From Monocercomonoides exilis PA203 (lineage: Eukaryota; Protista; Preaxostyla), in NCBI GenBank assembly GCA_001643675.2, contig LSRY02000050.1:1-64000 (forward strand): 64,000 nt of DNA, written 5' to 3'. This document shows, piece after piece, positions 1 to 29,599 of the stretch; positions within the stretch are counted from its first letter, which is position 1; each line of letters opens with the position of its first letter. The notes beneath the pieces are model-generated. The model had not been told where the DNA came from and did not search any database. It saw only the letters and a program-made list of their open reading frames with translations. The position numbers and the translations under genes are program-made.

Positions 1-3000
1 TCCCACCCAAAAATATCAATGAAATATTTCTCAAAACTTCACCAAGTGATGTGACAATGCAAGAGAGTGTGATGGGAGAGCGTTGCAAGGCGCTCCCACT
101 CTCGACGAGCCGGAAGGAACGCTGCGCGCTGCCCTAGGCCTTTTCCAGTCAATTTCTTATTAACCATTTTCTTTGTTTTTTTTTTGCGGGGCGGAGGGCG
201 CGGTGAGTGGTGTGGCCTGCTGTGCAGCCACAGGAGCCAGGGGCTATTTACACAAATTTTGTAATTTTTGTCGAAAAAGAAGTATTGAGAATAATTGGTG
301 TTGAGTGATATTTCGGGTGAGGGCCTCTCAGAGGGAAAAGCCTTCCCACCCAAAAATATCAATGAAATATTTCTCAAAACTTCACCAAGTGATGTGACAA
401 TGCAAGAGAGTGTGATGGAGAGCGTTGCGCTCCCCACCTCGACGAGCCGGAAGGAACGCGCTGCGCGCTGCCCTAGGCCTTTTCCAGTCAATTTCCTTAT
501 TAACCGAATTTTCTTTGTTTTTTTTTTGCGGGGCGGGGAGGGCGCGTGAGTGGTGTGGCCTGCACAGCAGGCCACAGGAGCCAGGGGGCTATTTACACAA
601 ATTTTGTAATTTTTGTCGAAAAAGAAGTATTGAGAATAATTGGTTTGAGTGATATTTCGGGTGAGAGGGTCAGAGGGAAAAGCCTTCCCACCCAAAATAT
701 CAATGAAATATTTCTCAAAACTTCACCAAGTGATGTGACAATGCAAGAGAGTGTGATGGGGCGTTGCAAGGCTCCCCACTCTCTCGACGAGCCGGAAGGA
801 ACGAAGCTGCGCGCTGCCCTAGGCCTTTTCCAGTCAATTTCCTTATTAACCGAATTTGTTTTTTTTTGCGGGGCGGGGAGGGCGCGGTGAGTGGTGTGGC
901 CTGCACAGGCCACAGGAGCCAGGGGGCTATTTACACAAATTTTGTAATTTTGTCGAAAAGAAGCATTGAGAATAATTGGTGTTGAGTGATATTTCGGGTG
1001 AGAGGGCCTCTCAGGGAAAAGCCTTCCCACCCAAAATATCAATGAAATATTTCTCAAAACTTCACCAAGTGATGTGACAATGCAAGAGAGTGTGAGGAGA
1101 GCGTTGCAAGGCGCCTCACCTCGACGAGCCGGAAGGAACGCGCTGCGCGCTGCCCTAGGCCTTTCCAGTCAATTTCCCTTATTAACCGAATTTTCTTTGT
1201 TTTTTTGCGGGGCGAGGGCGCGGTGAGTGGCCTGCTGCACAGCCACAGGAGCCAGGGGGCTATTTAACAAATTTTGTAATTTTTGTCGAAAAGAAGTATT
1301 GAGAATAATTGTTGAGTGATATTTCGGGTGAGAGGGCCTTCTCAGAGGGAAAAGCCTTCCCACCCAAAAATATCAATGAAATATTTCTCAAAACTTCACC
1401 AAGTGATGTGACAATGCAAGAGAGTGTGATGGGAGAGCGTTGCAAGGCGCTCCCCACCTCGACGAGCCGGAAGGAACGCTGCGCGCTGCCCTAGGCCTTT
1501 TCCAGTCAATTTCCTTATTAACCGAATTTTCTTTGTTTTTTTTTTGCGGGGCGGGGAGGGCAGAGTGGTGTGGCCTGCACAGCAGGCCACAGGAGCCAGG
1601 GGCTATTTTTGCAAATTTTGTAATTTTTGTCGAAAAAGAAGTATTGAGAATAATTGGTGTTGTGATATTTCGGGTGAGAGGGCCTCTCTCAGAGGGAAAA
1701 AGCCTTCCCACCCAAAAATATCAATGAAATATTTCTCAAAACTTCACCAAGTGATGTGACAATGCAAGAGAGTGTGATGGGAGAGCGTTGCAAGGCGCTC
1801 CCACTCTCGACGAGCCGGAAGGAACGAAGCCGCGCGCTGCCCTAGGCCTTTTCCAGTCAACCTTATTAACCGAATTTTCTCGTTTTTTTTTGCGGGGCGG
1901 GAGGGTGTGATGGTGTGGCCTGCTGTGCAGGCCACAGGAGCCAGGGGCTATTTACACAAATTTTGTAATTTTGTCGAAAAGAAGTATTGAGAATAATTGG
2001 TGTTGAGTGATATTTCGGGTGAGAGGGCCTCTCAGAGGGAAAGCCTTCCACCCAAAAATATCAATGAAATATTTCTCAAAACTTCACCAAGTGATGTGAC
2101 AATGCAAGAGAGTGTGATGGAGAGCGGCAAGGCGCTCCCCACTCTCGACGAGCCGGAAGGAACGCTGCGCGCTGCCCTAGGCCTTTTCCAGTCAATTTCC
2201 TTATTAACCGAATTTTCTTTGTTTTTTTTTGCGGGGCGGAGGCGGTGGTGGTGTGGCCTGCACAGCAGGCCACAGGAGCCAGGGGGCTATTTACACAATT
2301 TTGTAATTTTTGTCGAAAAGAAGTATTGAGAATAATTGGTGTTGAGTGATATTTCGGGTGAGAGGGCCTTCTCAGAGGGGAAAAGCCTTCCCACCCAAAA
2401 ATATCAATGAAATATTTCTCAAAACTTCACCAAGTGATGTGACAATGCAAGAGAGTGTGATGGGAGAGGCAAGGCGCTCCCCACTCGACGAGCCGGAAGG
2501 AACGAATGCGCCGCCCTAGGCCTTTTCCAGTCAATTTCCTTATTAACCGAATTTTCTTTGTTTTTTTGCGCGGGAGGGCGTGAGTGGTGTGGCCTGCACA
2601 GCAGGCCACAGGAGCCAGGGGGCTATTTACACAAATTTTGTAATTTTGTCGAAAAGAAGTATTGAGAATAATTGGTGTTGAGTGATATTTCGGGTGAGAG
2701 GGCCTCTCAGAGGGAAAAGCCTTCCCAACCAAAAAAATACTCAATGAAATATTTCTCAAAACTTCACCAAGTGATGTGACAATGCAAGAGAGTGTGATGG
2801 GAGAGCGTTGCAAGGCGCTCCCCACCTCGACGAGCTGGAAGGAACGCGCTGCGCGCTGCCCTAGGCCTCTTCCAAGTCAATTTTATTAACCGAATTTTCT
2901 TTGTTTTTTTTGCGGGGCGGGAGTGGTGAGTGGTGTGGCCTGGCACAAGCAGGCCACAGGAGCCAGGGGGCTTACACAATTTTGTAATTTTTGTCGAAAA

Positions 3001-6000
3001 AGAAGTATTGAGAATAATTGGTGTTGAGTGATATTTCGTGTGAGAGGGCCTCTCAGAGGGAAAGCCTTCCCACCCAAAAATATCAATGAAATATTTCTCA
3101 AAACTTCACCAAGTGATGTGACAATGCAAGAGAGTGTGATGGGAGAGCGTTGCAAGGCGCTCCCCCACTCTCGACGGAAGGAACGCGCTGCGCGCTGCCC
3201 TAGGCCTTTTCCAGTCAATTTCCCTTATTAACCGAATTTTTGTTTTTTTGCGGGGCGGGGAGGGCGCGGTGAAGGTGTGGCCTGCCGTGCAGGCCACAGG
3301 AGCCAGGGGGCTATTTACACAAATTTTGTAATTTTTGTCGAAAAAGAAGTATTGAGAATAATTGGTGTTGAGTGATATTTCGGGTGAGAGGGCCTTCTGA
3401 GGGAAAAGCCTTCCCACCCAAAAATATCAATGAAATATTTCTCAAACTTCACCAAGTGATGTGACAATGCAAGAGAGTGTGATGGAGGTTGTAAGGCGCT
3501 CCCACTCTCGACGAGCCGGAAGGAACGTGCTGCGCGCGCCCAGGCCTTTTCCAGTCAATTTCCCTTTATTAACCGAATTTTCTTTGTTTTTTTTTTGCGG
3601 GGCGGGAGGGCGCGGTGAGTGGTGTGGCCTGCACAGCAGGGCCAGGAGCCAGGGGGCTATTTACACAAATTTTGTAATTTTTGTCGAAAAAGAAGTATTG
3701 AGAATATTGGTGTTGAGTGATATTTCGGGTGAGAGGGCCCTCTCAGAGGGAAAAGCCTTCCCACCCAAAAATATCAATGAAATATTTCTCAAAAACTTCA
3801 CCAAGTGATGTGACAATGAGAGTGATGGAGAGCGTTGCAAGGCGCTCCCACCTCGACGAGCTTTGAAAGGAACGCGCTGCGCGCTGCCCTAGGCCTTTTC
3901 CAGTCAATTTCCTTATTAACCGAATTTCTTTTGTTTTTTTTTGCGGGCGGGGAGGGCGGCAGGTGGTGTGGCCTGCATAGCAGGCCACAGGAGCCAGGGG
4001 GGGCTATTTACACAAATTTTGTAATTTTTGTCGAAAAGAAGCATTGAGAATAATTGGTGTTGAGTGATATTTCGGGTGAGGGCCTTCTCAGAGGGAAAGC
4101 CTTCCCACCCCAAAATATCAATGAAATATTTCTCAAAACTTCACCAAGTGATGTGAGACAATGCAAGAGAGTGTGATGGGAGAGCGTTGCAAGGCGCTCC
4201 CCACTCTCGACGAGCCGGAAGGAACGCTGCGCCGCCCTAGGCCTTTCCAGTCAATTTCCCTTATTAACCGAATTTTCTTTGTTTTTGCGGGGCGGGGAGG
4301 GCGGTGAGTGGTGTGGCCTGCACAGCAGGCCACAGGAGCCAGGGGGCTATTTACACAAATTTTGTAATTTTTGTCGAAAAAGAAGTATTGAGAATAATTG
4401 GTGTTGAGTGATACTAGAGAGGGCCTTCTCAGAGGGAAAAAGCCTCCCACCCAAAAATATCAATGAAATATTTCTCAAAACTTCACCAAGTGATGTGACA
4501 ATGCAAGAGAGTGATGGGAGAGCGTTGCAAGGCGCCCCACTCGACGAGCCGGAAGGAACGCGCTGCGCGCTGCCCTAGGCCTTTTCCAGTCAATTTCCCT
4601 TATTAACCGAATTTTCTTTGTTTTTTTTTTTTGCGGGGCGGGGAGGGCGCGGGGAGGGGTGTCCGCACAGCAGGGCCACAGGAGCCAGGGGGCTATTTAC
4701 ACAAATTTTGTAATTTTTGTCGAAAAAGAAGTTGAGAATAATGTTGAGTGATATTTCTGAGAGGGCCTTCTCGAGGGAAAAAAGCCTTCCACCCAAAAAA
4801 TATCAATGAAATATTTCTCAAAACTTCACCAAGTGATGTGACAATGCAAGAGAGTGTGATGGGAGAGCGTTGCAAGGCGCTCCCCACTCTGAGCGGAAGG
4901 AACGCTGCGCGCTGCCCTAGGCCTTTTCCAGTCAATTTCCTTATTAACCGAATTTTCTTTGTTTTTTTTTTTTGCGGGGCGGGAGGGCGCGGTGGTGTGG
5001 CCTGCACAGCAGGCCACAGGAGCCAGGGGGCTATTTACACAAATTTTGTAATTTTTGTCGAAAAGAAGTATTGAGAATAATTGGTGTTGAGTGATATTTC
5101 GGGTGAGAGGGCCTTCTCAGAGGGAAAAGCCTTCCCACCCAAAAATATCAATGAAATATTTCTCAAAACTTCACCAAGTGATGTGACAATGCAAGAGAGT
5201 GTGATGGAGAGCGTTGCAAGGCGCTCCCACTCGACGAGCTGGAAGGAACGCTGCGCGCTGCCCTAGGCCTTTTCCAGTCAATTTCCCTTATTAACCGAAT
5301 TTTCTTTGTTTTTTTGCGGGGCGGGGAGGGCGCGGTGAGTGGTGTGGCCTGCACAGCAGGCCACAGGAGCCAGGGGGCTATTTACACAAATTTTGTAATT
5401 TTTGTCGAAAAGAAGTATTGAGAATAATTGGTGTTGAGTGATATTTCGGGTGAGAGGGCCTTCTCAGGGAAAGCCTTCCCACCCAAAAATATCAATGAAA
5501 TATTTCTCAAAACTTCACCAAGTGATGTGTAATGCAATGCAGAGTGTGATGGGAGAGCGTTGCAAGGCGCTCCCCACCTCGACGAGCCGGAAGGAACGCG
5601 CGCTGCCCTAGGCCTTTTCCAGTCAATTTCCCTTATTAACCGAATTTTCTTTGTTTTTTTGCGGGGCGGGGAGGGGCGGTGAGTGGTGTGGCCTGCACAG
5701 CAGGCCACAGGAGCCAGGGGGCTATTTACACAAATTTTGTAATTTTTTGTCGAAAAAGAAGTATTGAGAATAATTGGTGTTGAGTGATATTTCGGGTGAG
5801 AGGGCCTTCTCAGAGGAAAAGCCTTCCCACCCAAAATATCAATGAAATATTTCTCAAAACTTCACCAAGTGATGTGACAATGCAAGAGAGTGTGATGGGA
5901 GAGCGTTGCAAGGCGCTCCCCACTCGACGAGCCGGAACGCGCTGCGCGCTGCCCTAGGCCTTTCCAGTCAATTTCCCTTATTAACCGAATTTTCTTTGTT

Positions 6001-9000
6001 TTTTTTTTTGCGGGGAGGGCGCGGGGAGGTGTGGCCTGCACAGCAGGCCACAGGAGCCAGGGGGCTATTTACACAAATTTTGTAATTTTTGTCGAAAAAG
6101 AAGTATTGAGAATAATTGGTGTTGAGTGATATTTCGGGTGAGAGGGCCTTCTCAGAGGGAAAAAGCCTTCCCACCCAAAAATATCAATGAAATATTTCTC
6201 AAAACTTCACCAAGTGATGTGACAATGCAAGAGAGTGTGATGGAGAGCGTTGCAAGGCGCTCCCCACTCGACGAGCCGGAAGGAACGCTGCGCGCTGCCC
6301 TAGGCCTTTTCCAGTCAATTTCCTTATTAACCGAATTTTCTTTGTTTTTTTTTTGCGGGGCGGGGAGGGCGCGGTAGTGTGGCCTGCAGGCCACAGGAGC
6401 CAGGGGGCTATTTACACAAATTTTGTAATTTTTGTCGAAAAAGAAGTATTGAGAATAATTGGTGTTGAGTGATATTTCGGGTGAGAGGGCCTTCTCAGAG
6501 GGAAAAGCCTTCCCACCCAAAAATATCAATGAAATATTTCTCAAACTTCACCAAGTGATGTGACAATGCAAGAGAGTGTGATGGGAGAGCGTTGCAAGGC
6601 GCTCCCCACTCTCGACGAGCCGGAAGGAACGCGCTGCGCGCTGCCCTAGGCCTTTTCCAGTCAATTTCCCTTATTAACCGAATTTTCTTTGTTTTTTTGC
6701 GGGGCGGGGAGGGCGCGGTGAGGTGTGGCCTGCACAGCAGGCCACAGAGCTCAGGGGGCTATTTACACAAATTTTGTAATTTTTGTCGAAAGAAGTATTG
6801 AGAATAATTGGTGTTGAGTGATATTTCGGGTGAGAGGGCCTTCTCAGAGGAAAAAGCCTTCCCACCCAAAAATATCAATGAAATATTTCTCAAAACTTCA
6901 CCAAGTGATGTGACAATGCAAGAGAGTGTGATGGGAGAGCGTTGCAAGGCGCTCCCCACTCGACGAGCCGGAAGGAACGCGCTGCGCGCTGCCCTAGGCC
7001 TTTTCCAGTCAATTTCCCTTATTAACCGAATTTTCTTTGTTTTTTTTGCGGGGCGGGGAGGGCGCGGTGAGTGGTGTGGCCTGCACAGCAGGCCACAGGA
7101 GCCAGGGGGCTATTTACACAAATTTTGTAATTTTTGTCGAAAAGAAGTATTGAGAATAATTGGTGTTGAGTGATATTTCGGGTGAGAGGGCCTTCTCAGA
7201 GGGAAAAGCCTTCCCACCCAAAAATATCAATGAAATATTTCTCAAAACTTCACCAAGTGATGTGACAATGCAAGAGAGTGTGATGGGAGAGCGTTGCAAG
7301 GCGCTCCCCACTCGACGAGCCGGAAGGAACGCGCTGCGCGCTGCCCTAGGCCAGTCAATTTCCCTTATTAACCGAATTTTCTTTGTTTTTTTGCGGGGCG
7401 GGGAGGGCGCGGTGGTGGTGTGGCCTGCTGCAGGCCACAGGAGCCAGGGGGCTATTTACACAAATTTTGTAATTTTTGTCGAAAAGAAGTATTGAGAATA
7501 ATTGGTGTTGAGTGATATTTCGGGTGAGAGGGCCTTCTCAGAGGAAAAGCCTTCCCACCCAAAAATATCAATGAAATATTTCTCAAAACTTCACCAAGTG
7601 ATGTGACAATGCAAGAGAGTGTGATGGGAGAGCGTTGCAAGGCGCTCCCCACTCTCGACGAGCCGGAAGGAACGCGCTGCGCGCTGCCCTAGGCCTTTTC
7701 CAGTCAATTTCCCTTATTAACCGAATTTTCTTTGTTTTTTTGCGGGGCGGGGAGGGCGCGGTGAGTGGTGTGGCCTGCTGTGTAGCAGGCCACAGACAGG
7801 GGGCTATTTACACAAATTTTGTAATTTTTGTCGAAAAGAAGTATTGAGAATAATTGGTGTTGAGTGATATTTCGGGTGAGAGGGCCTTCTCAGAGGGAAA
7901 AGCCTTCCCACCCAAAAATATCAATGAAATATTTCTCAAAACTTCACCAAGTGATGTGACAATGCAAGAGAGTGTGATGGGAGAGCGTTGCAAGGCGCTC
8001 CCCACTCTCGACGAGCCGGAAGGAACGCTGCGCGCTGCCCTAGGCCTTTTCCAGTCAATTTCCCTTATTAACCGAATTTTCTTTGTTTTTGCGGGGCGGG
8101 GAGGGCGCGGTGAGTGGTGTGGCCTGCACAGCAGGCCACAGGAGCCAGGGGGCTATTTACACAAATTTTGTAATTTTTGTCGAAAAGAAGTATTGAGAAT
8201 AATTGGTGTTGAGTGATATTTCGGGTGAGAGGGCCTTCTCAGAGGAAAAAGCCTTCCCACCCAAAAATATCAATGAAATATTTCTCAAAACTTCACCAAG
8301 TGATGTGACAATGCAAGAGAGTGTGATGGGAGAGCGTTGCAAGGCGCTCCCCACTCGACGAGCCGGAAGGAACGCGCTGCGCGCTGCCCTAGGCCTTTTC
8401 CAGTCAATTTCCCTTATTAACCGAATTTTCTTTGTTTTTTTTGCGGGGCGGGGAGGGCGCGGTGAGTGGTGTGGCCTGCTGTGCAGGCCACAGGAGCCAG
8501 GGGGCTATTTACACAAATTTTGTAATTTTTGTCGAAAAAGAAGTATTGAGAATAATTGGTGTTGAGTGATATTTCGGGTGAGAGGGCCTTCTCAGAGGAA
8601 AAAGCCTTCCCACCCAAAAATATCAATGAAATATTTCTCAAAACTTCACCAAGTGATGTGACAATGCAAGAGAGTGTGATGGGAGAGCGTTGCAAGGCGC
8701 TCCCCACTCTCGACGAGCCGGAAGGAACGCGCTGCGCGCTGCCCTAGGCCTTTTCCAGTCAATTTCCCTTATTAACCGAATTTTCTTTGTTTTTTTGCGG
8801 GGCGGGGAGGGCGCGGTGAGTGGTGTGGCCTGCTGTGCAGGCCACAGGAGCCAGGGGGCTATTTACACAAATTTTGTAATTTTTGTCGAAAAGAAGTATT
8901 GAGAATAATTGGTGTTGAGTGATATTTCGGGTGAGAGGGCCTTCTCAGAGGGAAAAAGCCTTCCCACCCAAAAATATCAATGAAATATTTCTCAAAACTT

Positions 9001-12000
9001 CACCAAGTGATGTGACAATGCAAGAGAGTGTGATGGGAGAGCGTTGCAAGGCGCTCCCCACTCCTCGACGAGCCGGAAGGAACGCGCTGCGCGCTGCCCT
9101 AGGCCTTTTCCAGTCAATTTCCCTTATTAACCGAATTTTCTTTGTTTTTTTTTTTTGCGGGGCGGGGAGGGCGCGGTGAGTGGTGTGGCCTGCTGTGCAG
9201 GCCACAGGAGCCAGGGGGCTATTTACACAAATTTTGTAATTTTTGTCGAAAAGAAGTATTGAGAATAATTGGTGTTGAGTGATATTTCGGGTGAGAGGGC
9301 CTTCTCAGAGGGAAAAAAGCCTTCCCACCCAAAAATATCAATGAAATATTTCTCAAAACTTCACCAAGTGATGTGACAATGCAAGAGAGTGTGATGGGAG
9401 AGCGTTGCAAGGCGCTCCCCACTCTCGACGAGCCGGAAGGAACGCGCTGCGCGCTGCCCTAGGCCTTTTCCAGTCAATTTCCTTATTAACCGAATTTTCT
9501 TTGTTTTTTTGCGGGGCGGGGAGGGCGCGGTGAGTGGTGTGGCCTGCTGTGCAGGCCACAGGAGCCAGGGGGCTATTTACACAAATTTTGTAATTTTTGT
9601 CGAAAAAGAAGTATTGAGAATAATTGGTGTTGAGTGATATTTCGGGTGAGAGGGCCTTCTCAGAGGGAAAAGCCTTCCCACCCAAAAATATCAATGAAAT
9701 ATTTCTCAAAACTTCACCAAGTGATGTGACAATGCAAGAGAGTGTGATGGGAGAGCGTTGCAAGGCGCTCCCCACTCGACGAGCCGGAAGGAACGCTGCG
9801 CGCTGCCCTAGGCCTTTTCCAGTCAATTTCCCTTATTAACCGAATTTTCTTTGTTTTTTGCGGGGCGGGGAGGGCGCGGTGAGTGGTGTGGCCTGCTGCA
9901 GGCCACAGGAGCCAGGGGGCTATTTACACAAATTTTGTAATTTTTGTCGAAAAAGAAGTATTGAGAATAATTGGTGTTGAGTGATATTTCGGGTGAGAGG
10001 GCCTTCTCAGAGGAAAAAGCCTTCCCACCCAAAAATATCAATGAAATATTTCTCAAAACTTCACCAAGTGATGTGACAATGCAAGAGAGTGTGATGGGAG
10101 AGCGTTGCAAGGCGCTCCCCACTCTCGACGAGCCGGAAGGAACGCGCTGCGCGCTGCCCTAGGCCTTTTCCAGTCAATTTCCCTTATTAACCGAATTTTC
10201 TTTGTTTTTTGCGGGGCGGGGAGGGCGCGGTGAGTGGTGTGGCCTGCTGTGCAGGCCACAGGAGCCAGGGGGCTATTTACACAAATTTTGTAATTTTTGT
10301 CGAAAAAGAAGTATTGAGAATAATTGGTGTTGAGTGATATTTCGGGTGAGAGGGCCTTCTCAGAGGAAAAAGCCTTCCCACCCAAAAATATCAATGAAAT
10401 ATTTCTCAAAACTTCACCAAGTGATGTGACAATGCAAGAGAGTGTGATGGGAGAGCGTTGCAAGGCGCTCCCCACTCTCGACGAGCCGGAAGGAACGCGC
10501 TGCGCGCTGCCCTAGGCCTTTTCCAGTCAATTTCCCTTATTAACCGAATTTTCTTTTGTTTTTTTTTTTTGCGCGGGAGGGGCGCGGTGAGTGGTGTGGC
10601 CTGCTGTGCAGGCCACAGGAGCCAGGGGGCTATTTACACAAATTTTGTAATTTTTGTCGAAAAAGAAGTATTGAGAATAATTGGTGTTGAGTGATATTTC
10701 GGGTGAGAGGGCCTTCTCAGAGGGAAAAGCCTTCCCACCCAAAAATATCAATGAAATATTTCTCAAAACTTCACCAAGTGATGTGACAATGCAAGAGAGT
10801 GTGATGGGAGAGCGTTGCAAGGCGCTCCCCACTCTCGACGAGCCGGAAGGAACGCTGCGCGCTGCCCTAGGCCTTTTCCAGTCAATTTCCCTTATTAACC
10901 GAATTTTCTTTGTTTTTTTTGCGGGGCGGGGAGGGCGCGGTGAGTGGTGTGGCCTGCTGTGCAGGCCACAGGAGCCAGGGGCTATTTACACAAATTTTGT
11001 AATTTTTGTCGAAAAGAAGTATTGAGAATAATTGGTGTTGAGTGATATTTCGGGTGAGAGGGCCTTCTCAGAGGGAAAAGCCTTCCCACCCAAAAATATC
11101 AATGAAATATTTCTCAAAACTTCACCAAGTGATGTGACAATGCAAGAGAGTGTGATGGGAGAGCGTTGCAAGGCGCTCCCACTCTCGACGAGCCGGAAGG
11201 AACGCGCTGCGCGCTGCCCTAGGCCTTTTCCAGTCAATTTCCCTTATTAACCGAATTTTCTTTGTTTTTTTGCGGGGCGGGGAGGGCGCGGTGAGTGGTG
11301 TGGCCTGCTGTGCAGGCCACAGGAGCCAGGGGGCTATTTACACAAATTTTGTAATTTTTGTCGAAAAAGAAGTATTGAGAATAATTGGTGTTGAGTGATA
11401 TTTCGGGTGAGAGGGCCTTCTCAGAGGGAAAAAGCCTTCCCACCCAAAAATATCAATGAAATATTTCTCAAAACTTCACCAAGTGATGTGACAATGCAAG
11501 AGAGTGTGATGGGAGAGCGTTGCAAGGCGCTCCCCACTCTCGACGAGCCGGAAGGAACGCGCTGCGCGCTGCCCTAGGCCTTTTCCAGTCAATTTCCCTT
11601 ATTAACCGAATTTTCTTTGTTTTTTTGCGGGGCGGGGAGGGCGCGGTGAGTGGTGTGGCCTGCTGTGCAGGCCACAGGAGCTCAGGGGGCTATTTACACA
11701 AATTTTGTAATTTTTGTCGAAAAAGAAGTATTGAGAATAATTGGTGTTGAGTGATATTTCGGGTGAGAGGGCCTTCTCAGAGGGAAAAGCCTTCCCACCC
11801 AAAAATATCAATGAAATATTTCTCAAAACTTCACCAAGTGATGTGACAATGCAAGAGAGTGTGATGGGAGAGCGTTGCAAGGCGCTCCCCACTCTCGACG
11901 AGCCGGAAGGAACGCGCTGCGCGCTGCCCTAGGCCTTTTCCAGTCAATTTCCCTTATTAACCGAATTTTCTTTGTTTTTTGCGGGGCGGGGAGGGCGCGG

Positions 12001-17972: not shown

Positions 17973-18060
17973 AAGTCACGTCGCTTCGCACAAAATGCTC
18001 GCTTCGCTCGCATTTCGTGCTCGCTCCTTAGACTTTTGCTCGTCGAGCTTAGGGGAGCGC
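17949..18060 (-). other. Long fold-back hairpin at the array/unique-sequence junction
   Basis: Nested inverted repeats: GCGCTCCCC/GGGGAGCGC, CTCGACGAGC/GCTCGTCGAG and AAGTC/GACTT. On the minus strand the core reads GCACGAAATGC-GA-GC-GAA-GC-GA-GCATTTTGTGC. Confidence 0.9.
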
Positions 18061-20778
18061 TATTATTTTTTTTTTTTTTTAATTTTTAAATTTTTATTTT
18101 ATCATTTTGCATCGAATGTATTTATTTTATATTTTTTTGAAAATTATCAAAAATACCATATTATAATTTTATGTAATATAGCATTTGCAAAAACTATGAA
18201 ACGAATTGATTTTGAGTGATACATCCTCAACATTCGTTAACAAATCATTCTTACGTCTTGTTTCATGTATGTGCTGTTTTCTTTACATTTATTTTTCCGT
18301 TCTGATATGTTGCACATTTTGTGATAGATTTCTTGACTAGCTGTTTGTATTTCGTGCAATCATCGTAATATTCATTACAAATCTTTTACAGACAAAAGAT
18401 CTTCATCACTAAATTTTATTCTTCATCCGATTTCATTCCATCATAACAATTCGCAATAATTGTGACATTATTTTTTCAGATCTCAATGAATGCAACAAAT
18501 CAAGAGAAATCTTAAAGAAAATATTTTATCGTTCATTCAATAATTGTTTTTCAAACCTTTATGCAACAAACAACAAGTATCTCTTCTAGTCCTTTGTTTT
18601 CCGAAAGTTCGTAAGCAATTTCATGATAATTTGAGAAATACTACATTTCATTTTATATCACTCTCAATAAAAAGTCAAAAAAATTATCAAATAAATTGAA
18701 TATTTTTATTTTTTATTAAATATTGATGTCAAACCTTGATTTCATTAAAACTTCAAATAAAACTAGACTGAATTCAAGTAATCATAATGACATTAATCAA
18801 TGAACTTCAATGAAAATGTATATTCTTATTATTATCAACAGTTTATCTTGTTGATAATGAAAATCATCGATGATGTCCTTTCAATTAACGTAATGTCCTT
18901 CTTGATTTCATTTCAAGCTCATTCCAGCCAATTCTTTTCTTCCACAACAGATCCGAATAATATCATCAATTGTTTTTCACAACGAATTTGTGCCAATGCG
19001 TTGAGAAAAAATGTCGACTGTCATTCATGTTTCATATTCGATCAAACTTCATTTCATGAAAATTTTTTCTTTAGTGGATTTTCCTTTATCAGCATTTTTC
19101 CATCTTTGCATCTTGTTCCAGCTTAACAAATTACTTTTTTCTTTTTGCGCTATCTTCGTTCATCTTTTAACTTCATCACAGCTATTTCGTTTGCTCAAAA
19201 CATAAATTCTTTCTTTTAATGTCATTAATCAATGAAAATATAAACATTTATAAAATAACTTTCGCTAACAATGCACACACTTTTTATATCATCTAATGTT
19301 TGAATGACTGCTTGACAAAATTCTGATTTGTTTGAAAAAAACTTGCTGTATCAAATTATGATCACAATGAATACCATACAAAAAAATATATAGAACAAAA
19401 CATTCAATAACAATTTATTTATCGAAATCAGCAAAGTGAAATAAAAATGAAACGCAAAATCCTTATTTTGTTTGAAAATTATTCTTCAATTATGTTAAAA
19501 TCTGTAATAGTGCAGTCTGATTCACATATTTTTTGTCTCATTTATTTTGTATTTTGTTCTGCTTTCTTCCTCATGCAAATATCGAACATCTCTATTCAAT
19601 AGAGTGAATGCAAAGATTTATCCATGCGCACTGTTGAGAATTACCTTTGAAACAGAGATTATTTGAAAAAACCAAACCAAGTTATGTGTTCAAACAGAAT
19701 TGAAAGAAACTGATTCTGATTCAAAACTTTTGCTATTCGTTGTGCTTTGTTATTTGGTATTTGGATGCATCGTGAAATATCTTTTCTGCATTCAGATTGA
19801 ATGAAGATGCTCCAACAAAATGATTAAAGAAAGCAATCATTCACATTTCACATGATTCAAATGAATTTTCCAATTTCATCATTCAGCAGTTTTTGGTGAA
19901 ATAGTACTTTGCCCATTTTTGTGTTATCATGAATAACTTTTCTTTAACTAAAACAATTCAATTTTGCTTTTGTTTTCTCGTTAGAATAATCGATAACAAC
20001 ATGATCTTCCAAAAACCAATTCATTATTCTTTGTACTTGATGATTGTTTCATTCGACTTTCTTTAATTCCTCTTGTTCAGATGACAAAGAAATTAATTAT
20101 CATCGCCATTTTCAACGATCGAACGGAGACAAAAAACAAATCTTTCTAAGAACATTTCTCGAATCGCCATTTGTTTCTTTTGCAAAACAAATGAATAACA
20201 AAAACTCTTGATAAACTCAATTTCTGAAAAATGTTGCAATGCATTTGATTGTGAATATATCTCATTTAAAGAAGAAACGATGATGAATGACTTGAATGAA
20301 CTCATTGATATTTAATGATCAACCATCACAATTCATTTGTTTGTGATCATCGTATTCGTTCATTAAATATGCGTTTCATGGATTCCTATTCTAATTAGCT
20401 TTCATTGTGCTGTCTGCAACCTCCTTCCATCATTGAGAATGTTCACCAGGCTTAAAACGTCAACAACAAGTTTGCTTTTGTTTTCCTACTCAAATCTAAT
20501 TAAATTATCCTTCATTTGTTGCAACATTTATCTCAGTCCACATATATAATCTTTTGTCACAGAAAGATTGGTGTTTTTAATGTTGCAAAACACGAAAAAT
20601 TAAAAACTCAATTTAAAACATTTCACGCTTTTATTAAAACCTCTCTTTTTATCGGAATGTTTGTGTATGAATTAATAAAAAACAATTGTACTGATTGAAT
20701 ATGAAAAAAAGATAATGAGAATATAAACAAACAGTAAGCGCCCTGTGGAAATGAACTTCCAAACAATAATAAAGAGTG

Positions 20779-23155
20779 TCAATTCTTCTCTCCTCCTTTC
20801 TCTTTCTCAGGTGCAGAGTTCAAGTTTCCCAATTGTGGATGATCCGTCTTAAATTGTTCATATTTTGTCATGGATTTTGAATAGTCACTCATTGATCTAT
20901 CTTTCGTGATGTGTCGTATTCTATCTCTGCAAGAGTTTGCAGTTCTTTCGAATAATTGCTGACTTGCAGTTTTGAAATCTCCAGACTGCAAAAAACTTTT
21001 CATCAGTATCCGATCTTCTTCTGCTGTCCATCTGCGTCTTGATTTTGTTCCAAGTATCTTGTTGATGGGTCTATTCTCTCTAAGTGGAACTTTTTCTTTT
21101 GGTCTATGAAATTTGAGTTTCGTGCTTCCATTCAAATACTCTTGTATTCCTGCTAAATATAAACGTACTGCTTCCACAACATTTTTATTCTTCTTCAGTT
21201 TCTGTAATAAATCGATTCTAGCTTGCTTCATGAATGTGTTTCCCTTTTCACACTTAACATTATGATTATTCAAATACGATGAAGCAGCCAACCGATTCAA
21301 TCGGATTACGCAATTATATGGATAAAAGAACTCACTGCACGTGGCTTTTATTATTTCGAGAACATAAAAGTCAAATGCAAGTATAATTGATTCCTCCTTC
21401 CAAATTGGCTCATTTAATTTGATGTTGTGATATATTGCAGGACTTGTTAAAGTCATATCATAGTAATCATCGGATTCAATTGCTTCATCCTGGAATCCAA
21501 GCCTATTACCAATTATTACAGCCTTCTCAGTCTCTTTCACATATTCCCACTGGGATTTTTGAAATGAAGGCCCAATTACCTACAAAAGCTGTCGCCTCAA
21601 GCACCTGTTTCCTTTTTCCTGGTTTTCCCCTGCTTTTAGCAAAGCTGAGCAAATAAAACCCGACCTAAAGGAATGAAAGCCAAACAGGTTATCAGGATAA
21701 CCTGCTTGGACAGCTCTTTTTCAGTCGAACTCTCATTGCACCCTTTCTAAGTTGCCAGATAAATTGCTCCTCCAACTCCTTAAGCTCCCATTTGTCAAAA
21801 TTGGTTAGGGAGAGTCCAAACTCCTCCACCAAATACTGCTCCAGCCACCATATTACGTTAAGTTGATGCTTTTCGTTAATTGCTCCTTCCACCGTAACAC
21901 AGTGATTGTCACCATTCCACCCTTTCCCACACTCAAGATTAAACGTAACTTTGATAAAATTTGAGTTGGGAGGAGAGTAAACTCGGATGATATCCTTCAA
22001 TCTTATATGAGCACATGTTTGTGCTCTCGCTCCCGTTGAAAGAGCAAACAAGAACAAGGAAGCCTCTTGGGGCTTCTCAACTATCCAGTCGGGATAGCAT
22101 TCTAAAATACGTTGCAAATCTGATACGATGAGAGGCTGTTTTTTCCATTTATTTTCATTCTCCTCTCTCATTTTTGGCAAAGGCAATCCTTTCTTCTTTC
22201 TTTTTCTGATCCATGTTTTGATTTCCATTAATGCTCGATGAACTTTCATTCTGACTTTATCCTTCACAGGTTTTCCAGTTTTTGTCTCAGATATATTGAA
22301 AAGAGATGATCGAATGCCATTCTTTATTGTTTCAACAGAATAACCGACTGCAGTTCCAAGCAACTTCATAAATCCATACACAGGTTTTGCCTTCAATGGG
22401 AAAGGTTCCTTCTTTGCCATTTTGCAATAATCAATGAACATTCCACAAACCCATTTGTGTGTTTTAACAGTTTCGTCACAGAATGGTAAACCCTTCTCCA
22501 CATATGGTTGTAACTCTTCTCTTGAATAGGATCTCAACATATCTGAAAACTTTGTAGGAGAATCATAAGCATATCTTTGTGTTGTCAATGCAGGGTTTGT
22601 TGAAGGTGATGAAGAATTGTCTGGAAGAATATCTAACATTGTTGCATTAATATTTCCATATAAGTCTTTGAAATCAAGAGCGAATGCATCTTTTGATTCA
22701 AATGAAACTTTTTCAGATATCGCCTTTTCCTTTTTCTCCAATTCATCCAATTTTTCAGAAATAATTGACAAATTCTTATCATTGACAAGAACTGAGACCT
22801 TTCTTCTTTTGGATGATTGCATTGCGGACCAAATTGAAGATTTTCTATCTTTGTGCCTAATTTTTGAAGGATGGCAATCACAATATTGAAAATCACAATT
22901 TGTTTCTGTTGATTCGGAATCTTTCATTTCATCATCGTCTGTGTTTTCTTTTGTTGATAGAGAAGATGAAAACTCTTCATAGCATGAATTGGCATTTTCC
23001 ATGTCTGTTTGGCAATCATAAGTGTTATCATCTGTATCAGTTTGAGAATCTTCAAAAGATGACTTTATAAGAGAAGGAAGTTTTTTCATAAAATCAATCT
23101 TTGATTTCCTTTGAGTTGTGCTGCAGTCGACTTCAAAGCATTCATTATCTTCCAA
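20779..23155 (-). CDS. Tyrosine recombinase with C-terminal Myb/SANT domain (YR-Myb copy 1); three frameshifts in A-runs, so either sequencing errors or a young pseudogene
   Basis: ORF 23155-21692 has EASLFLFALSTGARAQT (catalytic R) and GKG. Frame-hopping through 21720-21541 gives AGYPDNLFGFHSFRSGFICSALLKAG..KQVLEATAFVGNW..WEYVKE (HxxR, W, Y), which joins ORF 21540-20779. That ORF ends with the Myb repeat RRRWTAEEDRILMKSFLQSGDFKTASQQLFERTANSCRDRIRHI. It is colinear with the 25178-26920 protein. Confidence 0.88.
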
Positions 23156-23204
23156 CGAAATATTTTCTTCGTTTTGACTGTCAGGTTTTGTCTTTAAATT
23201 TTCT

Positions 23205-24314
23205 TCAAGAATTTTCTCTCTTTTTCGCTCTTCTTTTCAATTTTATTCGAAATAAACTCGGTTCCATCTTCTTCCATGAATATTCTTTCAAAAGTGTCAC
23301 AACAAATGTTGCTCGTTGAAATCGAACAAGATGCAGAAGCCGAAGCTGAATTTCTTTGATTGCATATCGATTCTGTAAATGGATTTTCTGAGATTTCTGA
23401 GAAAACATTATCTTTTTCTTTTTTTGAAAAGTTAAAGAATGAGATTAACTTAGATTTAAACGCAAACCATTTTCTGAGGAATTTGATTTCTTTTCTGAAT
23501 ATTTCGCTCTTCTGTGTTTTCTTTTTTTATTGCTTGTTCTTTTCTTCTCATTCTGCTCATGTGCAGTTTGAGAAGATGGGTGCGATTTCTTCAAATTGAA
23601 TTCCTGTTTTTCCTCTGCCTTATTCTGTTTCGCGTTTGTGCAAGTATCGTCTGAAGATTCCATGTGTTCCAAACATTTCTTGTCCAAATTTTCTTTTCGG
23701 GATATAAAAAGAGGTCTCGGATATGGAGATTTATGTTGATAATCTCGAAGGTGATCTAATGAAGGTTGTGGTGAAAGATTTTTTAACAGCGTTGAATAAT
23801 AATCCACAGAAGGAATTTCATCTTCTTTCATGAAATTTAGAAGCCAGTTTGAAATTGAATCTGAATAAGGCTTTTTCTCTATTTCTTTTTCATTGGACAC
23901 TGCTTCTTCTTTTTCTTGATCATGTTGTTTTTTATAAGCCAACCTTGGGCAATAAAACATTGGTGTCGAAATTACAGATTCGTATTCTTGTGTAGTTGAA
24001 GCCAGATGCAATGGAGAGCTCGGACAAGGAATTGAAGAAGAAGATGAAGGAGAAAATGGAGGTGAAAAAGAGTGAGAATATGATGATCGCGGTGATGGAG
24101 AATGAGAAGGAGAATGATGAAAATAAACTGGAGAGAATGGCGGAGGAGAAAAAAAACCAGGTTGTGAAGGGGAAAGAATTGCATCGGATGTTGTTTCATC
24201 ACTTTCATCGCTGTCGCTGCTGTCATCTTCCGAAGAAAATGTTTCTTTCTGAATTTTCCTGATTTTTTCTATTATTGAAGTTGATAATAAAATTAATATT
24301 ATAATTTTAAACAT
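23205..24314 (-). CDS. Ser/Pro- and charge-rich low-complexity coding segment; possibly upstream exons of YR-Myb copy 1 or a separate accessory gene
   Basis: ORFs 24314-23445 and 23408-23205 lie on the same strand directly upstream of the YR ORF. Candidate GT..AG introns are near 24330-24270 and 23448-23400. No recognisable domain. Confidence 0.4.
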
Positions 24315-25126
24315 TAAATCAAATACAAACTTCCGATTTTTGTATTCTTATGACTGTAATCCAGAAGCAATTCAGAATTAGTTTACAAATCATTAGAATA
24401 TGAAGTGCATACGTATTAATGCGATAGGCTTGAAAGCTTTGCATTCAAATTGTTTGCTCAGTAATAAAAAATATTCTTTTCTTTATTAATATTTTTGATC
24501 AAATCACAATATTCATATTTTTTGTGAACAATTAGAAAATTTTAATATTGAAATCATGCAAATAATTATTCGCTATAAAGTTATTTATTATAGTCAATTG
24601 GAATTATCTTCCAAGTCAGTTTTTCAGAGCAAAGAAAAAGTTCATAAGTTCAAAATAATTGTTCATTGTTGTTTATAGACTTTTTAATTGAAAAAAGAAC
24701 CTGCCAAACAGCTATAAAATTTATACAAATCAGATGATTCTGTTGAATTGAAATGTTAAAAGGCTCACTGTTAATGGATATCAATAACTTTGCTTTTATT
24801 TTCAATTTTCATATGCATATAAGAAAAAGAAACAATCAATAGTCAATAATGTTTTTTATTAAAAACGACTTCACACCCGCTTAAAACACTGAAACACTGA
24901 TATTGATAAGTGTACGTAAACCAGTCAATTAAAACCTTTTCTGTTGAAAAAATTTAAATACATTATGATCAAACTTTATTATAAAAATGATATTTAAAAA
25001 ATCATAAATCTCTCTATGATTTGTATTTTACTCCAAATATACCGGTTCAAAAAATGAGCAAATTTTGTTAATCAATATTTTGCTACGATCTGGATCGTCA
25101 GATCAAAAATTTAATCAAAAAAAACG

Positions 25127-25140
25127 TAACCCTAACCTAA
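25127..25140. promoter_or_regulatory. Telomere-like motif TAACCCTAACCTAA just upstream of YR-Myb copy 2
   Basis: The sequence is directly visible. A second CCTAACCCTAAC lies at ~28488-28499. Function is inferred only. Confidence 0.35.
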
Positions 25141-25177
25141 ATACAAGGACCAGTCTGCAGCACTTGAAGAACAAAAT

Positions 25178-26920
25178 GTGTCATTGGATAGAAAAAGAAC
25201 AAAGCCAACATTTTTGGAAAATGCATTGAACGTGGTCAGCAAAAACAGAATATTGAAATATTTTGATGAGCCACGTCACTATTCCAATTCAACTTTAAAA
25301 AAACACACTTGGGTTTTTCGTTTGTACAATTCATTTGCTCAATGTTTCGATTTTTTACCATTTCCTATGAATAAAAAATGTATAAGAGGATTTTTACGTT
25401 TTTTAGGACATGATTGTAAATACTGCATTTTTTCTATTGAGTGTGTTATTGTTCCATCTTTGAAACGAATTCAACAAAGAATGTTTAACGAATCAATTGA
25501 CAAAGATTTGGACAGTGAAATCAATGGAATAGTCAGAGAACTTAAAATGAACAAATCTTTGAAGCAAAGAGGTGAAGGAAAGCAACCTCTTGTAACTTTC
25601 GATATGAGTTACTTAATTGACAGCATTCCTGACTATTTCGCTGACAAAGCTTCAGAGGCATCTTTGTTTTTATTCTCTCTTCATACAGGAGCAAGAGCAG
25701 TGACATGTGGAGGTGTAAGATTATGTGATATCAGAAAAGTCATAATTCAAGATGATGATTCGATATTTGTCAAAATCAGACTTATGAGAAACAAAGGAAA
25801 TGTGAACTGGAATCATGTAATAACGTTGGAAAATCAAAAAGCTGACAACAAATCATTGGATGCAGTTTATTGGCTCAGACAACACATACAATCTCAATTC
25901 AACATGGATTTGTTTGAACCGTCTTTATGGCCAGTCGAAGAGAAAGATGAAAGAGTATTATGGAAGTGGGACACTGAAAACATGAGAACAAGATTGAAAC
26001 AAAGACTTGAAATGGCAGGCTTTCCACCAGCATTGTTTGGATTTCATTCTCTCAGATCAGGATTTCTGTGTTCAGCTGTTATAAAAGCAGGATCAGATAT
26101 CAAACAAAGACAAGCAGTCTTGGAAACTTGTGCATTTGTGGCAGGCTGGATTCCATTCTCGCATGCTGAAATGGTTTATGTGAAAAAAGCTTGCGTTCAA
26201 ACAATAATTGCATCAAGAGTGATCATGCTCAACAAAGATAATGAGAAACAATCAGTGATGGACAACAGATTATTAACAATTGAGGATTTTCATGGAATAA
26301 CTCTCAGAAAGAACAAATGGAATAGTGAAATCATTTTTGCATCATTCTCAAGAATCATTTTGGATCAATTGAAAAAGGATAGAGTTGGAGTCAAAAATAC
26401 ACCTGATTCAAATAAATATATATTGCAACTTGGGTTGAATAAATATGTTGAAACAAATGAAGAGTTGGAGGAGCTGGCAAAAGTCAAATATGATCCATTG
26501 ATTCTTAAATCAACACCTCAATTTTTCTGTGGAATTCGAATAAACGCAAGAGCTGAAGTTGCAAGAAAGGATATCATCAAAATATTGCTGAGAGATCCAA
26601 AAATATTGAAACAGCAAGCTGAAACATTCATTGCATTCATGAAAGAACAAGAAATTTGGTTGAAGGAGGTGAAAACATACAAGCACAGAGTTGAAAAAGT
26701 TAGTACAACAAACAAGATACTTGAAACAAGAGAAAAGGATGAAAAAGGAAATAGAAAGAGAATCAAGTGGACTGAAGAAGAAGATAAAACATTGAAATTT
26801 CATAAAGAAAGAAATGAAACTTGGGTTCAAATATCAAAACATTTAACAGGAAGAACTCCTGGTGATTGCTCAGATAGATGGAGAAACTTGAAAAAGAAAT
26901 TAGAAAGAGAAAAAAAGTGA
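25178..26920 (+). CDS. Tyrosine recombinase with C-terminal Myb/SANT domain (YR-Myb copy 2), uninterrupted; exact start uncertain
   Basis: 580-aa ORF with EASLFLFSLHTGARAVT (R), NKG (K), FGFHSLRSGFLCSA (HxxR), VAGW (W) and MVYVKK (Y). The C-terminus RIKWTEEEDKTLKFHKERNETWVQISKHLTGRTPGDCSDRWRNLKKK is a three-Trp Myb repeat. Confidence 0.93.
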   Translation: MSLDRKRTKPTFLENALNVVSKNRILKYFDEPRHYSNSTLKKHTWVFRLYNSFAQCFDFLPFPMNKKCIRGFLRFLGHDCKYCIFSIECVIVPSLKRIQQRMFNESIDKDLDSEINGIVRELKMNKSLKQRGEGKQPLVTFDMSYLIDSIPDYFADKASEASLFLFSLHTGARAVTCGGVRLCDIRKVIIQDDDSIFVKIRLMRNKGNVNWNHVITLENQKADNKSLDAVYWLRQHIQSQFNMDLFEPSLWPVEEKDERVLWKWDTENMRTRLKQRLEMAGFPPALFGFHSLRSGFLCSAVIKAGSDIKQRQAVLETCAFVAGWIPFSHAEMVYVKKACVQTIIASRVIMLNKDNEKQSVMDNRLLTIEDFHGITLRKNKWNSEIIFASFSRIILDQLKKDRVGVKNTPDSNKYILQLGLNKYVETNEELEELAKVKYDPLILKSTPQFFCGIRINARAEVARKDIIKILLRDPKILKQQAETFIAFMKEQEIWLKEVKTYKHRVEKVSTTNKILETREKDEKGNRKRIKWTEEEDKTLKFHKERNETWVQISKHLTGRTPGDCSDRWRNLKKKLEREKK

Positions 26921-27058
26921 TCTGTTTTTATTGTTTTTTTAATTGTTTTTCTTTTTATTTTTTCTATTTTTAACTTTAATTGTCTGTTCGTTTTCTTTAT
27001 ATTTTTTACTCTTTTTATTTAGAGTTTTTTTTTTGTTTTCTTAAAAAATACGCAAAAT

Positions 27059-27495
27059 TCAAATAATAACTTGATAAAAAACTTTAAAATGCTCTTCTAT
27101 TTTCTTTTTTATAAAAAGATACTTCTCAATAATCAACTTCCGAAAATCGTGCTCCTCCGAATCAGCTGATTGATCTGCTCCGTCAACGATATGATCACAC
27201 GACAGCAAGTGTTCTTCATTTGGCTCAACGAAATCATGCACATCATTTTCGAAACTTGAATGATAACGCATCTCTTGATTGTCTTTTTCTGAATCTGATT
27301 CATCCACCTTCCTTCTTTTGATTGTTGCAATCGATTGACCTGTTTCAGAATGCTGATGAAATATGTCATTTGCAGCAGATTCTTATTCATGACTGTTGCA
27401 TTCATCACATGATGAATCTTCATCAAAATTGAGCTCAATATCAAACGTTTCTTGTAATTTATCTTCAGTCGATGTTTTTTTTTTGTTTTTTTCAA
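27059..27495 (-). pseudogene. Fragmented acidic ORF of unknown function, convergent with YR-Myb copy 2
   Basis: Overlapping short ORFs (MDESDSEKDNQEMRYHSSFENDVHDF...) in different frames; no domain recognised. Confidence 0.3.
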
Positions 27496-28331
27496 AAATT
27501 TTCAAATTAAAAAATATTCATTTTTCATTAATGATTTCTTTTCTTTACAAATAAACATCTGAATTTGATAATATTTTATGTTAAGAGAATATCATCGCTG
27601 ATGCTTCTTAATCGCTAAGTTGAATGGTCGAAGCCACATACCAGCTGAAGTTATCAATGATTTTTGTCAATAGAATTTTAAAATTTTCAGTCAAAAATAT
27701 TTTTCAATGTTTTTTTGATATCTCACCAAATATAAGAGATATTGAAATTTCAATAATTTTCCCGTTGTTAACTATTAATGTCCTTTCCATTCATATTCAT
27801 TGAAAGAATTTCAAAAAATAAATTTTCACTTTCATTTTTTCCAATTTTTCCATTGACTTTCACATGTGAGAAATATTGACTTTCTTTTTGTTTTTTTCAA
27901 AATTCTCACAAATCAAGATATCGTTTGAAAAAGTACAAAACAGCATGAAATAATCAAATTCACATTGTATTCAACAATATACATCATTATATCGATTTTC
28001 AACAAAAATTCAAAAAATTCATTTTTTCATTGAAATTCAGTCAATCACATATTTCATCAAAAACTTTCATTATTCTTGACAGTTCAAAAGAAATCCTTTG
28101 GAACGATAAAATACTTGTGTTTGTTATCCAAATGAAGCAGAGACAGTGTTTGAATCATTGAGAAATGTCTCAGTTCAATCATTCAAAAAAGTGATTTTTT
28201 CGAAAAAAATACTTTTTTTTTCTCTGCTTTTATTCACTATATCTGATGTTGTTATGCATGTTTGAGCATCGCACATGTCAATATGAGTTAAAAAAGTTGC
28301 TTTTCATGAAGATTTCTGAATTTGTTGCAAA

Positions 28332-28499
28332 ATATTGCATGGGTTGGCAGGTTATTCAAGGTTAACTCCAATTTGTGAGGGTTAACTCATTGACCAAGGT
28401 TGTTTTCAGCCAACCAACAAAAAATCGTAAAAATCATGTGCCAACCATTACAATATTAAAATTTCCAAGGCTTTTTTAGTTGAATTGCCTAACCCTAAC
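28332..28499. promoter_or_regulatory. Cluster of GGTT/AACC motifs, mostly within an imperfect inverted repeat
   Basis: GGTT at 28342, 28350, 28360, 28380 and 28398; AACC at 28412, 28443 and 28491. ATATTGCATGGGTTGGCA pairs with TGCCAACCATTACAATAT (15/18). GGTTAACTC occurs twice. Confidence 0.55.
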
Positions 28500-29599
28500 A
28501 AACAAAAAATTGGAAAGCTATGTAAATCCCTTTTTTCATTCCATTTCTTTCAATTTTTCGCTTCCCTTATTTCACAAAAAATCATCTTTCCGCAAAAATA
28601 ATTCTTCGCCAAAGGTTAATGCCAGGCATCTTTGATTAATCTTATATTTCGCTAACCTTCTTTTCATTTTTCTTCCCTGCTTTCCTTATTCAAAGCCATA
28701 TAATCGCTCATTCTTTCAATAGCCTGAATGAAAAAGAAAGATCACTTCAAAATAAATAACAACAACAAACTTTCAGAACATTTTTATAAGCAATTTTCCA
28801 ACTTTTTCCCCCTAGGCACCCGTTTTCCTCCAATTCAATTTTTTTATTCCTTCCTTTTTCGTGTTTATTCAATTGATTCTTCAATTTAACTTCCAAATCC
28901 CTTCATCCTGGGCACTTTCCATATGTACTCGCTGTCTAAACTTGATGGTTATCCTTCATTACGAGATATCAAACTTTCATTCATTTCCATCTCCGATCCT
29001 GAAAAAAACATAAAACCTATCAATAGGCAAATTTTTTTTAATGCAAACCAATCAACTTTCCTTTAATGAAAGCTTATAATTGAAAAGAAAAAAATATTTC
29101 TCAGAATAAATATAATATGAATAATTATTCATTTTTTGGAACTGAACCAACAACAAAGTCATTTGTCATAGTTGAAAATAGCTGAATTAATTATATGAAA
29201 AGATATCCTTGATTTAAAGCCTTTATAAATATAGATTTAAAAAAAAACATTCCAACGTAAAAAAAATTTTGCTGACTGACGAAACCATCGATTTTTCTAT
29301 CCGTCACCCAGGCTAAAATTTTTTTGTTTTATCTTTCACTTTATCAACAAAAAAATTGAAAAATTCTAAAAAAGTGAGATTTTTCTTTTTTCTTTCACAT
29401 AATTTGATATATGTTAAAGAAGACTTTATATTACAAATAGAGAGCGAAACATCGAAAATAAATAATTTTTTCTTGTTCCTCTACTCTATTTTTAACTTTT
29501 TCACATTTATTTGTTCTCTGTGTAATAAAATATCTAAAATAAAAATTTATTTCTTTTGATGTTCGCAGTGTAATCCACAATAAACAAAGCAAATATTCT

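Follow-up and report, generated by a model that had tools for sequence, protein, structure and literature searches.

The stretch of DNA analysed here, referred to below as the window, comprises bases 1-64000 of contig C48 (658,552 bp; LSRY02000050.1) of the Nanopore assembly of Monocercomonoides exilis (PMC8767320; 101 contigs, 82.3 Mb), and forms the left end of a chromosome of this oxymonad. Read inwards from the contig start, it contains a telomere-associated satellite array, an imperfect palindrome at the inner end of this array that leads into an AT-rich spacer, and two genes that each encode a tyrosine recombinase with a Myb domain and are separated by a telomere-repeat seed. A preliminary account made from the letters of the window (the sequence-only reading) had taken array, palindrome and gene pair for a single recombinase system. 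We consider it probable that the chromosome end is instead a stack of independent pieces, namely a satellite array, a conserved palindromic spacer and separate recombinase modules.

The satellite array

The array occupies bases 1-17972 (plus strand), comprises approximately 51 units of approximately 355 bp and runs off the contig start. The sequence-only reading had proposed a tandem array of approximately 18 kb, and this was confirmed with Tandem Repeats Finder, which gave a period of 353 bp, 51.3 copies and 95% matches. The consensus unit is 355 bp long, and units cut at an anchor measure 353-362 bp across the inner 11 kb. Within bases 1-6000 the units are shorter (~343 bp) and only ~90% alike, compared with 355 bp and 98% further in, which probably reflects a poor consensus at the contig start and no real gradient. 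The array has a G+C content of 48%, against ~30% in the flank. The units had been described as self-complementary, and this is only partly the case: the unit holds three short palindromes, one of which is a perfect 10-bp stem with a 3-nucleotide loop, and it folds moderately more stably than shuffled sequences (z = -3.0).

The satellite unit is present on nine contigs (C48, C49, C5, C64, C19, C86, C7, C9 and C100), and all arrays lie no more than ~50 kb from a contig end. Array polarity is fixed, with the unit on the plus strand at left contig ends and on the minus strand at right ends, in each case the strand that carries the C-rich telomere repeat. Array lengths range from 5 to more than 28 kb, with five contigs breaking inside arrays, and only about a tenth of chromosome ends are array-bearing. 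The telomere repeat of M. exilis is TTAGGG (PMC6759080), and on C9 a terminal telomere (1-2311) is followed directly by an array from ~2350. This junction and the fixed polarity on the nine contigs bear out a location at the chromosome end, which had been offered earlier as a possibility.

Unit identity is 96-99% within an array or a flank group and 81-90% between the four flank groups, C48/C49/C100, C5/C64, C19/C86/C7 and C9, here called array lineages. A three-base inversion in the loop of the unit's perfect palindrome gives rise to two variants, ACA and TGT, which are distributed in blocks. The ACA variant is found in the distal units of the window and in all 18 units of C100, and TGT in everything else, including the proximal units of the window. 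This pattern argues for a single loop-inversion event that spread locally; flip/flop of the unit palindrome as a sign of hairpin replication was considered and rejected in view of the same blocks. C100, a contig of 15,135 bp whose units are 98% identical to those of the window, begins with an array on the minus strand (1-6725), after which come, in this order, a TTAGGG seed of 45 bp, a recombinase-Myb module of 4.4 kb and a terminal telomere of 4 kb. The ACA variant that it has in common with the window points to C100 as the distal end that is missing from C48.

The outer array borders that were analysed, a set that excludes the distal ends of C49, C5 and C86, lie at differing unit phases (positions ~118, 280 and 333) and continue into telomere repeats, which is what the healing of breaks by telomerase should produce. 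On C9, units at 2300-2460 and 8500-9700 are seemingly overwritten in register by CCCTAA blocks, and an identical telomere-to-array junction occurs twice (~2350 and ~9745), with a 1.1-kb interstitial telomere tract separating two arrays. The mosaic arose either through true duplication of a capped end or through a consensus that blends reads whose telomeres had been healed at different positions.

The inner end of the array

The last partial unit of the array forms the left arm of an imperfect 112-bp palindrome (17949-18060). A fold-back at the array end had been claimed in the sequence-only reading and stands: as DNA, the segment folds at -33 kcal/mol (z = -4.2), a value equalled by none of 200 shuffles. 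Short-read contigs from four DNA runs of one sample were compared with the window; a 111-bp contig reproduces 17944-18054 with zero differences and the following 5 kb are likewise reproduced, so that the palindrome is not a long-read assembly artefact. Its dyad symmetry is imperfect, the central 11 nucleotides and two inner segments being unpaired in the fold, unlike the resolution site of a hairpin telomere. The palindrome apex (18004, minus strand) reads GCGAAGC, a heptamer that folds into a DNA mini-hairpin of exceptional stability.

Loop and right arm of the palindrome together constitute a conserved 89-bp island (17972-18060), which is 95-100% identical across the four array lineages. Identity is lower on both sides, at 67-79% in the adjoining unit sequence and 55-65% in the linker that follows. 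Beyond the island lies the AT-rich spacer (18061-18175, plus strand), in which an 18-bp box (18145-18162) is conserved. Loop and right arm, AT-rich linker and box together occur just nine times in the genome, in each case at an array end. Eight loci have an identical inner junction, cut at a constant unit phase; the ninth, on C31, lacks the array and the left half of the palindrome and has telomere repeats in their place, with the join lying within the island. No copy of the loop and right arm was found in the array units, except for a 23-bp inverted one. The possibility that the spacer is a diverged unit was rejected, because past 17989 only this 23-bp inverted arm matches the unit and the rest is at shuffle level. 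The 18-bp box was also considered as a common terminus of recombinase elements and rejected, since eight of its ten genome occurrences are at array ends.

Homology of the window spacer to other array ends stops at ~18172-18180. Across the lineages, homology past the island ends at nested points, after ~115 bp (C48 type), ~170 bp (C9) and 753 bp (C5 versus C19), and no telomere seed was found at these end points; such nested ends without seeds are what template-switch or break-induced copying would leave.

In five of the eight loci the left arm of the palindrome follows the local unit variant, the right arm does not change, and the fold loses stability (from -32 to about -24 kcal/mol). No compensatory changes between the arms were found across the eight loci, where variation within the island is too low for a covariation test. 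Because the left-arm changes are uncompensated in the right arm, the long stem itself seems not to be what is conserved. A metagenome search with an exact 34-mer of the island returned zero matches. Rfam models run at permissive E-values over 15-34 kb gave only chance-level matches of microRNA-like and RUF6-like type, and ARAGORN found no tRNA in the scanned sequence.

Two recombinase genes in separate modules

The plus-strand gene (25178-26920) reads toward the centromere and encodes a protein of 580 residues with a C-terminal Myb domain above the Pfam threshold. The AlphaFold model of this protein has a predicted local distance difference test score (pLDDT) of 82.5, and its 28 best matches in the PDB are all Cre or Cre-derived (E 6e-7, template-modelling score 0.65 by target), the next being integron integrase, XerA, lambda Int and XerH. 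Across 20 homologues, residues R173, K206, H290, R293, W324 and Y334 are either invariant or conserved to at least 90%. As modelled, the fold is that of a Cre-like tyrosine recombinase. Sequence profiles recover little of this: the window proteins have no match to Phage_integrase (PF00589) in Pfam, which five of the 20 family members match weakly (best E 2e-4), a profile search of PDB sequences found the Myb domain only and not the recombinase domain, and none of the 20 members matches the Crypton-derived DUF3504 at E up to 1.

The minus-strand gene (20779-24314), which extends at least to about 23530 and reads toward the telomere, lies in three open reading frame pieces (20779-21540, 21692-23155 and 23445-24314), its frame being broken by single-base homopolymer indels at 21556, 21612, 21716 and 23220. 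Further homopolymer indels of one or two bases occur at 19379, 19665 and 20199. All four short-read contig sets, as well as the copies on C49 and C31, read these positions differently. The C49 copy, 99.7% identical, has an open frame of 916 residues with all of the R, K, H, R, W and Y residues and a Myb domain, and its protein is 29% identical to the plus-strand protein. The frameshifts are likely to be long-read consensus errors; for the window copy the correction goes no further than likely, because the short-read contigs merge three near-identical copies of the block at 18029-25140. The two head-to-head recombinase genes announced in the sequence-only reading are therefore present, with catalytic residues and Myb domains in both and a Cre-like fold modelled for the plus-strand protein. 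Its remark that reverse transcriptase and gag are lacking also holds for the region from 20.8 to 32 kb, where seven open reading frames of at least 120 residues were scanned and matched only Myb models in Pfam, with no reverse transcriptase, RNase H or gag. The combination of reverse transcriptase and RNase H beside a recombinase that marks DIRS, Ngaro and VIPER elements is thus not found among these seven frames.

The minus-strand gene is held in a duplicated 7.1-kb block (18029-25140, minus strand) that recurs on C49 and C31 at 99.4-99.75% identity, and the 2.55-kb segment 18200-20750 was found at these three block copies only. The block stops exactly at a C-strand telomere-repeat seed of about two repeats (25127-25141, plus strand), which lies between both genes, 37 bp before the start of the plus-strand gene, and forms the boundary between the two recombinase modules. 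Past this seed the window has the head-to-head recombinase, C31 has a recombinase in the same orientation, and C49 has none within 2.3 kb. Given that the block ends at the seed and has three different continuations, the two genes are not a pair. The sequence-only reading had proposed a Crypton-like element with two recombinases; its recombinase-only character, without reverse transcriptase, is retained, and its two genes fall into separate modules split by the seed.

A second C-strand seed (28488-28500, plus strand) brackets the plus-strand gene together with the first, defining a module of 3.35 kb. These two are the only stretches of at least two telomere repeats in the 64-kb window, where 0.12 would be expected from shuffles of the 46 kb beyond the array. 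Directly before the second seed, near the inner end of the module, the GGTT/AACC cluster described earlier is present as GGTTA, GGTTG and GGGTTAA motifs read directly from the sequence (28340-28450, plus strand). Further in, bases 29300-32500 are part of a very large sequence family whose members are scattered through chromosome interiors (of 1,272 first-look candidates, 40 were scored and are 69-84% identical), so that the domain specific to the chromosome end has its inner limit at the seed 28488-28500.

The recombinase-Myb family

A six-frame search of the genome gave a family of at least 77 matches among 180 candidates. All 40 of the family loci that were fetched lie no more than 51 kb from a contig end, and about two thirds of the family genes, judged by position, read toward the nearer contig end. 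Relatives 33-39% identical are encoded on metagenome contigs L072, L075, L076, L077 and L078. These carry two or three TTAGGG-type repeats near the gene, and on both sides of it in L076 (91-108 and ~4400) and L078 (573-584, 4042-4053 and 4116-4127). Seeds of two or three repeats bounding family members fit integration within telomere repeats. The recombinase-Myb elements look like DNA transposons with a specificity for telomere repeats, and apparently represent an undescribed family of mobile elements restricted to chromosome ends; no description of telomere-linked recombinase-only elements was found in the literature searched.

At the seven full loci checked, recombinase genes lie 2.5-4 kb from the palindrome and the order of array, palindrome and outward-reading recombinase is constant. 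The palindrome accompanies only nine of the at least 77 family loci, and the recombinases that adjoin arrays are only ~30% identical to each other. In a quick tree of 48 of these copies, the palindrome-adjacent recombinases sit in both deep clades, and the label requires 4 changes compared with a mean of 4.8 after shuffling. The recombinases of C86 and C7, identical to that of C19 over 230 residues, were omitted from this tree, and five rows with in-frame stops were entered with X at the stops. Nothing similar to the 355-bp unit or the palindrome was found in the metagenome contigs that encode relatives. The proposed linkage of recombinase, array and hairpin consequently does not hold, as the genes occur mostly away from the palindrome in M. 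exilis and entirely apart from unit and palindrome in the metagenome contigs; array, palindrome and the two genes are not one system.

Comparison with known chromosome ends and elements

The order that emerges is telomere, recombinase module, seed, array, palindromic spacer, and stacked recombinase modules split by telomere-repeat seeds, and constitutes a first anatomical description of an oxymonad chromosome end. Its closest analogues are the class A subtelomeres of Chlamydomonas reinhardtii, with a Sultan array, a Spacer and transposons, and the Subrel array and spacer of Coccomyxa (PMC8287924). In these green algae a telomere-adjacent array is followed by a conserved, transcribed Spacer and then by transposons, repeats of one end resemble each other more closely than those of different ends, and in one case a truncated spacer directly adjoins the telomere; the Spacer acts as a promoter and chromatin boundary (PMC8287924). 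The M. exilis ends are similar in having a species-specific array of fixed orientation, a constant innermost cut, a conserved non-repeated spacer and transposons further in. Here too the repeats are more alike within an end, and the truncated spacer on C31 abuts telomere repeats. The sequences themselves are unrelated, and the unit is 355 bp long in M. exilis as against ~850 bp in the algae. Arrays occupy about a tenth of the ends, compared with 27 of 34 in the algae. The M. exilis spacer, in contrast to that of the algae, begins with a 112-bp palindrome, and the transposons are recombinase-Myb elements, which also occur distal to the array, on C100. A layout of array and conserved spacer that has so far been described in green algae thus recurs in a very distant eukaryote, which argues for a convergent functional design of subtelomeres.

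The recombinase-Myb elements resemble Cryptons in being recombinase-only. An additional DNA-binding domain at the C terminus is known from some Cryptons (Kojima and Jurka 2011, PMC3212892), and no telomere-linked Crypton is described in that work (PMC3212892). The M. exilis elements differ from Cryptons in that they have no DUF3504 match, a comparison made with the DUF3504 model and not by direct alignment with Cryptons, and in that their closest structure is Cre and their DNA-binding domain is Myb. They also differ in distribution, the copies being restricted to chromosome ends and bounded by seeds rather than dispersed. The telomere-repeat seeds could be the equivalent of the terminal direct repeats of Cryptons.

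The Y' elements of Saccharomyces cerevisiae are multi-kilobase, coding subtelomeric elements that are stacked with short interstitial telomere tracts between copies; they encode a helicase and spread by recombination only. The M. exilis modules are likewise coding, stacked at chromosome ends and separated by telomere-repeat tracts, and differ in encoding a recombinase and not a helicase. In Chironomus a terminal satellite of 340-350 bp replaces the telomerase repeats, whereas the arrays of M. exilis are capped by canonical TTAGGG telomeres. There is also some likeness to Cre/loxP and to protelomerase sites, in the Cre-like fold, the catalytic residues and the palindromic element nearby, and it ends at the palindrome itself, the centre of which is no perfect dyad and which lies beside only the nine gene copies. 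Long terminal arrays of units of a few hundred bp are further known as subtelomeric satellites of plants, for example in potato and as the 528-bp khipu repeat (PMC3276127, PMC3797529).

Interpretation of the chromosome end

In the mechanism that we infer for this stack of independent pieces, the satellite would be homogenised locally by unequal exchange or local duplication, copies of it would reach other chromosome ends through ectopic recombination or break-induced replication, and telomerase would cap broken arrays. The spacer, comprising island, AT-rich linker and box, would be a functional boundary or promoter-like cis element and not a recombinase site; by analogy with the green-algal Spacer, a boundary or promoter-like function is the most likely one for the island. 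Telomere repeats would be the place where the recombinase modules integrate by recombination, probably targeted there by the Myb domain. On this reading the array is not a product of the recombinases, and the conserved island and the recombinase family pose two separate questions.

Several points weigh against this interpretation. A passive satellite model does not explain the extreme conservation of the island, its palindromic form or its GCGAAGC apex, and the boundary or promoter role suggested for it is pure analogy. The independence of the array from recombinase lineage is read from the quick tree, which covers 48 of the at least 77 copies. The constant order at the seven loci is only weakly informative either way, because most recombinase genes read toward the telomere in any case. 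Finally, the overwritten region on C9 may be a consensus artefact, so that the case for addition of a second array to a telomere is weak.

The island could alternatively be a dedicated cis element of chromosome-end maintenance, for example a site where an end protein, possibly a recombinase-Myb protein, anchors, regrows or delimits the array. We regard this as unlikely. If true, array, island and telomere-repeat-specific recombinase elements would together make up a DNA-based end-building system that works alongside telomerase.

Two further explanations are both quite doubtful in our view. According to the first, the array is a backup or alternative cap, comparable to the 340-350-bp terminal satellites of Chironomus, that grows when a unit circle or a sister array is copied by a rolling-circle or break-induced mechanism, with the island as a fixed priming or fold-back point. 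An inner junction that is fixed where the outer ends vary, arrays that are long and, at 98-99%, internally very homogeneous, and the stable fold-back at the inner end would all suit such a cap. Fold-back priming at the island would, however, yield inverted and not direct arrays, only about a tenth of the ends bear an array at all, and the ends are capped by TTAGGG telomeres of telomerase type (PMC6759080). The second explanation makes the island a small structured RNA gene, for example an RNA polymerase III unit that ends at the T-run 18066-18080. It would account for the conservation of the island, and the GC-rich structured segment of ~110 nucleotides is indeed directly followed by a run of 15 T; there is also a weak, sub-threshold likeness to Plasmodium RUF6 (25 bits against a gathering score of 70, E 0.37). 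The absence of any Rfam match at threshold and of a tRNA speaks against an RNA gene, as does left-arm variation that is not compensated in the right arm.

A direct role of the neighbouring recombinases in building the array, which was the proposal of the sequence-only reading, is more improbable still. The array would be their cis substrate, having arisen either by head-to-tail integration of ~355-bp circles or by amplification of the terminus of an element with two recombinases, and the palindrome would be the recombination site. The distance of 2.5-4 kb between gene and palindrome at all seven full loci agrees with this, the island is strongly constrained, and the palindrome centre lends itself to a reading as a 7-bp asymmetric core flanked by two inverted arms of ~13 bp, comparable to lox and FRT sites. 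Against it, the adjacent recombinases are ~30% identical and scattered on the tree, yet the island is 95-100% identical, and the palindrome is found at only a small part of the family loci (nine of at least 77). The boundaries of family members are telomere-repeat seeds and not the palindrome, and the gene pair is not kept among the three block copies. Neither an amplified terminus nor an integrated minicircle agrees with array units that have no loop and right arm, or with outer array ends that lie at variable phases and are joined to telomere repeats.

The short noisy units of the first 6 kb, the homopolymer indels absent from the short-read contigs and the resemblance of the C9 mosaic to a blended consensus would be in keeping with a long-read assembly artefact at a repetitive contig end, an explanation with next to no probability, as array, island and spacer recur on nine contigs with four different flanks and the short-read contigs reproduce the palindrome and its flank exactly.

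Other features of the window

Two features lie further in, beyond the chromosome-end-specific domain. A 19-bp tandem and inverted repeat at 33127-33245 gives a long AT-rich hairpin, which has a sub-threshold match to mir-651 (36 bits against a gathering score of 106) that is most likely due to chance. On the minus strand, bases 54464-58303 contain an open reading frame of 1,279 residues with a right-handed beta-helix domain and a repetitive acidic or proline-rich tail, probably encoding a surface-type protein.

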